A stretch of 64,000 nucleotides of DNA from Pavona decussata (Eukaryota): assembly GCA_977016875.1 (NCBI GenBank), contig CDRNST010000013.1, positions 620,001-684,000 of the forward strand, in the 5' to 3' direction. The notes under the pieces were generated by a model. It made no database searches. It saw nothing but the letters and a program-made list of their open reading frames with translations, and was not told the DNA's origin. This document shows, piece by piece, positions 54,270 through 64,000 of the stretch. Made by a program: the position numbers and the translations under genes. How positions within the stretch are numbered: position 1 is the stretch's first letter; each line of letters starts with the position of its first letter.

Positions 54270-55091
54270 TGAAATGTACTCTGCTAATATTTATATATAA
54301 GATCCCAAAAAAGTCTTCCTTTTTCCATTTCAGCTATTACGAGAGGGCAAAACAAGCGAGAGAAAATGTGGAAGCAAACACCAAGAAGCACGACAGAAGA
54401 GGTTGTTCTGTTGCATACACTCTAGCGTTGGAGTGGTTCAAAAATTTTGAAAAAAATGCGGACCACATGCCCAACTGTGCCACAAAAACCCTTCCCTCAT
54501 GCCTTTCAAAGACAGCCATGTTCCAGCTGTACTGGGAGCAGATGGCTGGGAAGCCTACGTTAATGCGTACTTCTTTTGTGTATGGAATGTGGAAAAAACA
54601 TTTCAGAAAAACTTAATAATCCCAAAGGTTGGTGGAAATAATACCATGTATTACACACGCATTTTATTGGGAGCCTGTTTTCAGGCTAGATTTGGTAGCC
54701 CAGGATACATTACTTTCTAATAATCCATATCTTTGTACGCTATAATGGAGATGAAATTGTCTCCACCCATGAAACTGACGGTTAGAACAATAATTGAGCC
54801 CAGGACACCACCATTTTACTCATTTCCCCCTTTATAGGGGAAAGGGATAATGCTGGTAGAAACATATTTTATTCTGGATATGGCTAAAGCTTATTTGATA
54901 AAGAGGATAGTAACTTGCAAAACTGATTGATGCAGAACACTATCACTGCATCGTGGCCTCTTCTGCATATTCCTTTGCAAGCCTTAGCTATGAATTGATG
55001 GCTATCGTCAATGGTCGACGAACTGATCAATTATAAATAATTTAGCAACGTTTAGGAGACAGCTCGTCTGCAAAGGCAAAATAATTTAGGT

Positions 55092-55134
55092 TTAGTATAT
55101 ACCAGACAAGTGAATAGTGCTTTTCGCGCGCGCT

Positions 55135-55171
<37 letters not shown>

Positions 55172-61400: not shown

Positions 61401-63871
61401 ACGATGCAAGAACAAAATTTACAGAGGTTCTTGGAAGGAAATCTGGACGCTTTTTTATTCTATCAACACGGGAGCCACAGTGCCTTTCCAATTATACCCA
61501 ACTTGTGCCATTTTCAGCCCTTCGAAAAAATCTCGAAACACATTAATATGTGTACCTGTAATGGCCATGGCTAAAAAATGAGAAAATCACAAGAAAAATT
61601 AAGGTACAAGTAAAAAAAATAACACTCAGTCTGCATGGTCTGCACAGTCTGCATGGTCTGCATTTCAACATGACCGCTTGTTACTTGCAAGTCTCACAAT
61701 GAACTAAGTACACCATAGTTGCAAACCATTAGATGCTCATTCTACAAGTTGACTTAATCCACAAAAACTAGAAGTGACTCTAGAACATTTCGTTACGGGA
61801 ATAATTTTTATTGGTTTTGAAGACAATAAAAAATCCCAGAAGCAAAACAGCAGGGAGTTCATTGGGCCAGGTTTTTCAAAGCTGTGCATGCACAGTTAAC
61901 AAAAAGAAGTATAATATTTTCAGACTTAATAAGATCTTTCAAGGGTCAGTAGTTACTTGACCACTGCTCAATGACAATGAGGGTGCATTGTATTTTGAAT
62001 TTAAAATATCAAACATCCCAAGAATTACACAGTCACTCCATGTTACCTTTTTTCCGACAAGTTACATTATTTTCCAGTATTGCAGAGGCTGGTTTGTCTG
62101 CTACAAGAACTATTGCAAAAATAGGCTTAGTATACAAATAATGTCAAGTTTAGTCAATGTTTGGTTGTGACATTATCATCTGTTTAGGCATTTTGTAATC
62201 TCAGTTTGCAGCCAAAGTTTAATATAACAGTCATGTTTTGTTAAGTAATCGTTAGTTTGATAGTCCTTGACATTTGTATAAGTTTAGCAACCTTCACTTT
62301 ATAATGTATCAATAAATTATTTTTGCCTTTTGCAAATCAAGCTCGATCCTTATTCACGCTGCTTGTCCAGTTAAATATCGACAAATTAATCTGACCCTGG
62401 GAAAGCTTTCTCCCTACCAAAGTCTGCAAATTCCCCCACTGTGTGGGGCTTCCCTAGCCTGAGATGTTACATGAAAAGGTAATCAAATACCATAAGTCAT
62501 CATTACTGTCCACCCACATTTAATATAATGTCAACTACGGTAGCTCATATGTTACTTTTCTTTGCTCCTACTAATGCACTTATCAGCGGTCATCCAGGGG
62601 GGCTGACTCCGGGGTACCCCTGGGCATTTGCACAATGACGTTTACAAATCCCCCCTACCCAAAATCAATGTTTTTTTTTACAGAAAGATGGAGAAAGCTT
62701 TTATCTGGTGCAATTTTATTTGAATGGCCTCCCTGTCAATATCATCTACTGTCTCATTACTCGTGAGGTCATTGGTCATGCAGGTCGAACGTAAATAAAA
62801 TCATGCTGGCATTGCTGGATTTTATCTACCTTTCTCTAATATAGTATACATAATTTTAAAACCGAAAAAAATCGTTTTTGCTATGTTTAATACATAGTTA
62901 CAAGAAGAAATAAGTTAGTTAAAATACCTTCCTGAATAGTTTGAATGCCTTCATTCGTTGTGCCTTCATGATCTAAAGTGGGAACTTTGATTTTGATGGC
63001 GAAGATGGTGGATGATGGAAGCTCCCCAGAGATATCTTCATCCACCTAAGGGCCGTCTTCAGTGAGGATCTCAACCTCTGAATTTAACTCAAGTCTTTCT
63101 TTTCCTGATGTGAATAAAATTTAGTGAATATTATTAAACGTTGCATGTCTTCACTTGTATTTGAATATTCTATGTTTTTTTATACGAGTCAGTAATTTAT
63201 TATTAAAAATTGTTACAAGCTTTTCTAATATTTCTCTACCTGCAAAATATTAACTTGTTTGGGGGGGGTGGGGCAAACACGGCAAAATTAATACAGTGAA
63301 TGTATGGTATGGGGAAAATGGGGAGTTTGATACGCGATAAAATAAGGACCGTTGACATTCTTAAATTTTTGTGAATTGCAAACTAAAGATACTAGCTAAA
63401 AGAGTTTACCGAGTAAATTTGAAGGAGATCGGTTGGCTGGGAAGCGAGAAACCTTACTTTTAGATTTCATACAAATGCTTATAAACAATTTCCCGTGAAC
63501 GGCTGTTCCAATTTCAAACGTATATATGAAACCGTGAAAAGGTCTATCGAAGGCGACGGTTACACAATCGACAAGAACAGAAAAGCCGCGGTTGTTTTTT
63601 TTTTTAATATGGCATACAGCTTCATAATTTATGAAAAAAACTCATCCAACGAGTATTTGAATATATGTTAACAAAGACGATCGCCAAAGGACGAGAAGAT
63701 TTAAATGTGTAAATATTTATAATCTGCGGGTGCAGCATTCTGTCACGCCATGAACTTAAGAAAAAAATAAATAAACAGAAATTGCTTACCTTTTGAAACA
63801 AGTTCAGCATAGTTTTCGGGCACAACGAACTTTTTCTTCAACCTCTCCTCACTCCAAACTTTGAAAAGGAC
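58420..63871 (-). pseudogene. Spliced gene with N-terminal CIDE-N domain (exons 63871-63790, 63104-62928) and probable downstream coiled-coil exon (~59338-58420)
   Basis: Spliced VLFKVWSEERLKKKFVVPENYAELVSK|GKERLELNSEVEILTEDGP*VDEDISGELPSSTIF matches the CIDE-N pattern FKV....K..V.....EL..K....L......EDG.EVD.D....LP..T; joining to the 3' exon is inferred. Confidence 0.65.
60122..61676. mobile_element. Non-autonomous MULE-type element with ~95-bp TIRs and 9-bp TSD
   Basis: CTTGTTACT|CGGTCATGTTGAAA ... TTTCAACATGACCG|CTTGTTACT; GCAGAC repeats in the TIRs. Confidence 0.88.
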
Positions 63872-64000
63872 CTACAGGAACAGAATAAACACTTTTGAAG
63901 GTCGCTCAGTTGGCATGCTCACTTGAGTGGAAAATATGAATAATTCAAACAGATGAGGAGACTATAAATCAACACCTATGTCATGAATATTCAACACCTA

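Follow-up and report, generated by a model that had tools for sequence, protein, structure and literature searches.

A 64,000-bp stretch of the genome of the coral Pavona decussata (assembly GCA_977016875.1, C13:620001-684000, C-numbers denoting contigs of this assembly), referred to here as the window, carries CIDE-N coding sequence on its minus strand, close to a DUF7869 transposase pseudogene. Positions 58285-64000, together with the 354 bp that follow the window end (up to L001:354, where L001 is the sequence rightward of that end), very probably represent the 5' part of a dead cut-and-paste transposon on the minus strand, and the DUF7869 fragment is independent of it. The transposon belongs to a family bounded by terminal inverted repeats (TIRs) that encodes a CIDE-N domain, an NCD2-like region and a large protein with a predicted RNase H-like core and a PHD finger, and the window copy is assigned to it by its matching TIR and by a layout shared with copies elsewhere in the 602-Mb genome.

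Complete members of the family are 6.8-8 kb long, with TIRs of ~60 bp that begin TGCACC and 3-bp target duplications of TTA or TAA. The copy on C273 (locus 807-7621, 6815 bp) has TIRs and the duplication TTA/TTA, and the copy on C516 (locus 6-7995, 7990 bp), to which that on C42 is identical in sequence, has TIRs and TAA/TAA. TIRs and TAA/TAA also enclose a 3327-bp internally deleted derivative on C62 (C62:3317599-3320925, corresponding to L002 2100-5426), so that three of three complete copies have the conserved TIRs together with perfect 3-bp duplications. This bears out the proposal of an earlier, sequence-only reading of the window that the CIDE-N sequence is transposon-borne. The family yields 50 matches in this genome, at about 25-30 loci, approximately ten of which have open frames of ~1100 residues. 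Of CIDE-N, the C62 derivative retains no more than the first 17 codons, and it is itself enclosed by another inverted-repeat structure (1117-1286 and 5425-5594).

The coding sequences of the C273 and C42/C516 copies follow one another on the same strand, in the order of a two-exon CIDE-N sequence, an NCD2-like/coiled-coil open reading frame (ORF), referred to here as the tail, and an ORF of ~1100 codons in the -1 frame, the large ORF. CIDE-N is thus the upstream part of this transposon's own coding region, with the RNase H-like ORF on the same strand, and not the convergent accessory gene that had been suggested for the window. Tail ORFs are found downstream of CIDE-N exons that are significant in Pfam at C273, C42/C516, C84 and C67, and intact element copies pass the Pfam cut-off for CIDE-N (PF02017, 23.5 bits) with exon 2 alone, at 40.6, 38.4 and 36.3 bits. 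On C42 a 1097-residue ORF begins 50 bp past the tail ORF; C273 and C84 are arranged alike, decayed to varying degrees. Homologous tails score against NCD2 (PF04905) at 33 bits on C67, which is above the cut-off, and at 23.9 and 20.6 bits on C84 and C49, compared with 100 bits for the NCD2 domain of the true NAB gene and no NCD2 match in Pfam for the window tail. Searches of the ESM Atlas also point the tail to NCD2 clusters, the top cluster being 41% NCD2. Subfamilies of this transposon at three further loci (C49:3.736 Mb, C54:0.629 Mb and C58:2.983 Mb; L009, L010 and L012) carry an NCD2-like tail and a large ORF with no CIDE-N, and a cysteine-containing ORF that has no Pfam match lies upstream.

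The large ORF is predicted to contain an RNase H-like (DDE-type) core. In the model of this core, which has a predicted local distance difference test (pLDDT) score of 71.5, residues 151-376 align almost only to the catalytic cores of integrases and transposases, and the top rows of the VIA-align comparison are retroviral integrases, IstA, Sleeping Beauty, Mos1, TnsB, Hermes, Mu and Tn5, with Z-scores of 5-7.1. A C-terminal PHD finger is recognised in 9 of 18 large-ORF members (best E 2.4e-6) and is the only match of the large-ORF alignment profile to PDB sequences (E 1.9e-5), while Pfam and NCBIfam scans of the large ORF found no transposase family. The profile matches 5276 cluster representatives in public data; the matches listed are all close relatives and so do not link the family to any named superfamily. 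Corals and one octocoral share long open frames at 40-70% identity. When two tail ORFs and the large ORF served as queries in word searches, the hits were only unnamed single-ORF proteins and one 'uncharacterized protein' of Dendronephthya gigantea.

The window copy retains both CIDE-N exons. Exon 1 (63791-63871, minus strand) runs up to a GT donor, and its peptide, which opens with V-L-F-K-V-W, is 70-72% identical to the paralogue exons on C282. Exon 2 (62929-63102, minus strand) is preceded by an AG acceptor and ends at a GT donor; it reads E-D-G-P-stop-V-D-E-D, the stop being an in-frame TAG (63046-63048, or 63048-63046 in reading direction) inside the conserved D-G-T-E-V stretch of the paralogues, most of which have Glu at this position. 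The exons, splice sites and TAG that the sequence-only reading described are therefore confirmed. Two small profiles were built from CIDE-N exons of the same genome that pass Pfam, and the window was scanned with them in six frames, with X in place of stops. Exon 1 (16.8 bits, independent E-value 3.8e-4) and exon 2 (11.1 bits, independent E-value 0.025, X at the stop) were each the sole real match, and the two matched exons are adjacent, collinear and divided at the intron position of the paralogues. This phase-1 intron, which follows K-G, is common to the window, C42, C273 and C282, and the core motifs (the F-K-V-W start and E-D-G-x-x-V-D-E-D) are present. The minus-strand sequence in the window reads as CIDE-N.

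At the position of the paralogues' initiator ATG the window has a TAG. Immediately upstream of exon 1, at 63872-63914, is an ATG-led stretch that ends in TAG and contains R-P-S-K-V, which resembles the L-F-K-V-W of the exon. This stretch, which the C62 copy also has, may be a local duplication of ~32 bp that displaced an original M-...-R-P-F-K-V-W start.

Further along the minus strand, a decayed NAB NCD2-like/coiled-coil ORF lies at 58519-59333. It is homologous to the paralogue ORFs (tblastn 4e-14), and the coiled-coil coding sequence that had been noticed at ~59338-58420 is accordingly a real remnant, at 59333-58519. The tail ORF ends at GAT TTT TAG (58529-58518) and overlaps a -1 frame that is open for ~80 codons (58282-58527, minus strand). 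These are the first ~80 codons of the large ORF, since they match the start of the large-ORF alignment consensus, and they are truncated. The corresponding junction on C42 (L016 3068-3079) reads GAT TTT TAA, with the -1 frame likewise open; both junctions would be compatible with -1 frameshifting on U UUU UA. C273 has no T-run at this place.

At its other end the window copy reaches a TIR at L001 298-354 that is flanked by TTA and matches the TIRs of the C62, C273 and C42/C516 copies. A terminus just right of the window had been anticipated, and extension of the sequence placed its tip 354 bp beyond the window end. About 484 bp separate the start of the TIR from CIDE-N exon 1, compared with ~414 and ~465 bp in complete copies, and homology with the C62 copy spans from the inside of exon 1 to the TIR tip. 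In the window and L001, neither a second TIR nor a further remnant of the large ORF was found. Direct repeats near the window end had been read as subterminal to an element, and the 10-mer TCAACACCTA does occur twice near the tip, at 63969 and 63991 (63969-64000, plus strand, 355-385 bp inside the element tip), with no further occurrence in 74 kb; in the homologous copy on C62 it is found only once, which offers no support for a role of the repeats.

The window copy is dead, as seen from its stops, a frameshift, a deletion, a nested miniature inverted-repeat transposable element (MITE) and its end at about 58285. In the tail ORF alone there are three stops (59299-59297, 58925-58923 and 58622-58620), the frame shifts once near 58958, and a deletion of 84 nt at 59150 has eliminated the G-Y-x-F-K-K-G-x-S-R-S segment. 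The nested element (60122-61676, 1555 bp) is a non-autonomous DNA element resembling Mutator-like elements (MULEs), with TIRs of ~90 bp and a 9-bp duplication, CTTGTTACT, at 60113-60121 and 61677-61685; dozens of copies of it exist, with identities of 82-92%.

Sequencing-run data for the region consist of contigs, and those of three runs from related corals carry the element at ~96-97% identity. In the relatives' copy the site of the nested element is empty, the 84 nt are present, four additional bases occur at 58958 and sense codons replace all three tail stops, leaving the tail ORF open. This copy extends for more than 2 kb to the left of 58285, where it diverges from the window, and its first 30 bases there translate to a motif like the C-x-G-L-L-x-V-A of the large ORF; judging from this short stretch, it would continue into the large ORF. 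The 30-base loose end was not found in the window. Runs X1 and X3 (58285-64000) are labelled metatranscriptomic and show introns and exons at equal, flat depth; their libraries probably contain DNA or unspliced RNA.

The left neighbour is a DUF7869 transposase pseudogene on the plus strand (54272-58080), with at least four in-frame stops and six exon blocks, at 54272-54604, 55846-55965, 56230-56376, 56902-57027, 57440-57568 and 57832-58080. It gives a Pfam match above the gathering score for DUF7869 (PF25273; 57850-58065, 65.7 bits, E 5e-18), and three of its exons score 46.8-83 bits in a profile search. Its exons were mapped with a relative on C88, an intronless protein on C206 being too distant to map them; the exon pattern is the same as in the C88 relative, and ~138 C-terminal codons are absent. 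The earlier description of a six-exon pseudogene of this type, tail to tail with the CIDE-N side, is thus upheld. Two other DNA copies of the fragment exist, both on C144, and cover window positions 52857-55952 and 54298-58216; over 54298-58216 (plus strand) the homology to C144 copies is at 85-88% identity, and it halts abruptly at 58216 without the CIDE-N side. For 58217-60100 no other DNA copy was found genome-wide. The 68 bp at 58217-58284 form the junction between two truncated elements. No convincing inverted repeats were found when the left end of the DUF7869 fragment was compared with its right end.

It had been proposed that both genes belong to one large composite element, a Sola-like DUF7869 transposase with a convergent CIDE-N accessory gene. 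The two coding regions, arranged tail to tail, are indeed no more than 70 bp apart, and C273, C67 and C282 have CIDE-N hits with DUF7869 hits at a distance of 20-66 kb. Against this, the C144 copies stop at 58216 and no other CIDE-N locus has a DUF7869 match within 20 kb (33 CIDE-N against 117 DUF7869 hits genome-wide, the window's own pair excepted), so that the genome-wide linkage expected of a single element is not found and the idea is unsupported. In complete copies the CIDE-N side has a TIR, duplications and an RNase H-like ORF of its own. Each of the two genes is cut short at the junction, and the window contains no TIR pair or duplications enclosing them. We regard the composite as highly improbable. 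The DUF7869 pseudogene is a separate, truncated, dead transposon fragment that is a neighbour by chance, and the tail-to-tail arrangement would have come from truncation and juxtaposition of two elements.

Two other explanations leave the DUF7869 fragment aside. The stretch could be the pseudogene of an ordinary host CIDE-N gene that happens to be next to transposon debris, as its low DNA copy number and close copy in related corals might indicate; likewise, the CIDE-N loci on C210, C67:3.27 Mb, C255, C289 and C85 have no transposase in the 10 kb examined. This was the first reading of the locus and was dropped after the large ORF, TIRs and duplications had been found. It is unlikely: a TIR typical of the family and flanked by TTA lies ~484 bp upstream of exon 1, the homology with C62 stays collinear up to the TIR tip, and the tail enters the start of the large ORF just as it does in TIR-bounded copies. 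A family of domesticated, transposase-derived host genes that is no longer mobile would account for the open frames conserved between corals and octocoral, and chromatin regulators typically carry PHD and NCD2-like domains. The TIRs and perfect duplications of complete copies, the many decayed copies, the 3.3-kb internally deleted derivative and the thousands of cluster representatives make domestication very unlikely, more so than the host pseudogene.

Several observations weigh against assigning the window sequence to a CIDE-N transposon. As single exons tested against Pfam, exon 1 reaches 12.5 bits for CIDE-N (E 0.16), below the cut-off, and exon 2 (as exon 2b) gives no match. At the DNA level, the window subfamily has one other copy in this genome, the 3.3-kb C62 derivative, in addition to two old fragments on C282. 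RNA-type joins of the CIDE-N exons to the tail or the large ORF, as well as the exon joins predicted by the sequence-only reading, are absent among the contigs; all of them run colinear to the genome and their depth is flat, which leaves no evidence for splicing or transcription. Public predicted proteins of the family are single-ORF calls without CIDE-N. As for the transposase itself, the fold matches are consistent but moderate (Z at most 7.1), a Foldseek search of the core model against the PDB gave no match below E 0.01, and the conserved acidic residues include D164/D165, D273 and D361, among which a catalytic triad is not assigned. Taken with these points, a dead CIDE-N transposon fragment remains the best explanation of 58285-64000.

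In intact elements, excision and insertion at T-W-A would be carried out by the RNase H-like ORF. In DFF40/DFF45 and CIDE proteins, CIDE-N domains assemble head to tail into homo- and hetero-oligomers, and the CIDE-N module of the element most likely multimerises its protein(s) or recruits a partner; the NCD2-like part may act as an interaction module of the co-repressor type, and the PHD finger may read chromatin. In the sequence-only reading, the accessory protein might act as a decoy for the apoptotic DNase or polymerise. Retention of the module in at least four divergent lineages, TIR-bounded or partly decayed, argues for its use. We tentatively suggest, as a possibility somewhat short of an even chance, that CIDE-N and the NCD2-like region are conserved as a functional module of a coral transposon family that is active, rather than being a capture in decay, that they are translated upstream of the transposase or fused to it by a -1 shift at U UUU UA(A/G), and that they serve to polymerise the transposase or to engage host DFF40/DFF45 and chromatin co-repressors.

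Among proteins with CIDE-N, the intact paralogues carry the same Pfam domain (27-41 bits) as DFF40/CAD, DFF45/ICAD and CIDE-A/B/C, and carry it at the extreme N-terminus, as the DFF proteins do. In contrast to the DFF proteins, the element's CIDE-N is followed by an NCD2-like coiled coil and a transposase, with no nuclease or ICAD body. The tails match the C-terminal half of NCD2 (profile positions ~72-125) of NAB co-repressors, but unlike NAB the element has no NCD1 and is set in a transposon, and the window copy is missing 28 codons of the NCD2 region. The left pseudogene belongs to the DUF7869 (PF25273) elements, to which the CIDE-N element is unrelated.

With respect to transposases, the predicted fold appears close to those of Sleeping Beauty, Mos1 and IstA. 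Zator is a superfamily of eukaryotic DDE transposons in the IS630-Tc1-mariner group (PMC7386202), the cores of which, like those of several other superfamilies, have no Pfam matches (PMC5751038). The CIDE-N element resembles Zator in its cut-and-paste TIRs, its predicted RNase H-like core and the lack of a Pfam match, so that an assignment to Zator would be tentative. The Zator target duplication, described by Bao and co-workers in 2009, is reportedly also 3 bp. To our knowledge, CIDE-N, NCD2-like and C-terminal PHD modules are not known from described Zator elements. Transposases that have acquired host domains, including THAP, BED, PHD and chromo domains, are well known. In the literature, no paper was found in which CIDE-N and NCD2 occur together or a CIDE-N transposase is described; an enrichment of CIDE-N in Hydra alongside transposase domains has been noted in a genome paper (PMC7642931).

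The window locus itself is a dead, truncated copy with a coincidental neighbour. The element could inform how transposon proteins assemble or make contact with the cell-death and chromatin machinery, and counts of CIDE-N genes in cnidarians may include transposon genes.

A second group of two-exon CIDE-N sequences, which start Y-K-I-W-N-L-N-R, is found on C210, C67:3.268 Mb, C255 and C289 (L014, L015, L019 and L020), with neither a tail nor a large ORF within 10 kb. On C85 there are two canonical full CIDE-N domains (94-98 bits), separated by 138 kb. In the window, a high-copy MITE of ~640 bp (55091-55730) sits inside intron 1 of the DUF7869 gene, and further high-copy repeats occur in or beside the DUF7869 fragment at 57140-57308 (~170 bp), 53959-54270 (~310 bp) and 52977-53479 (~500 bp).

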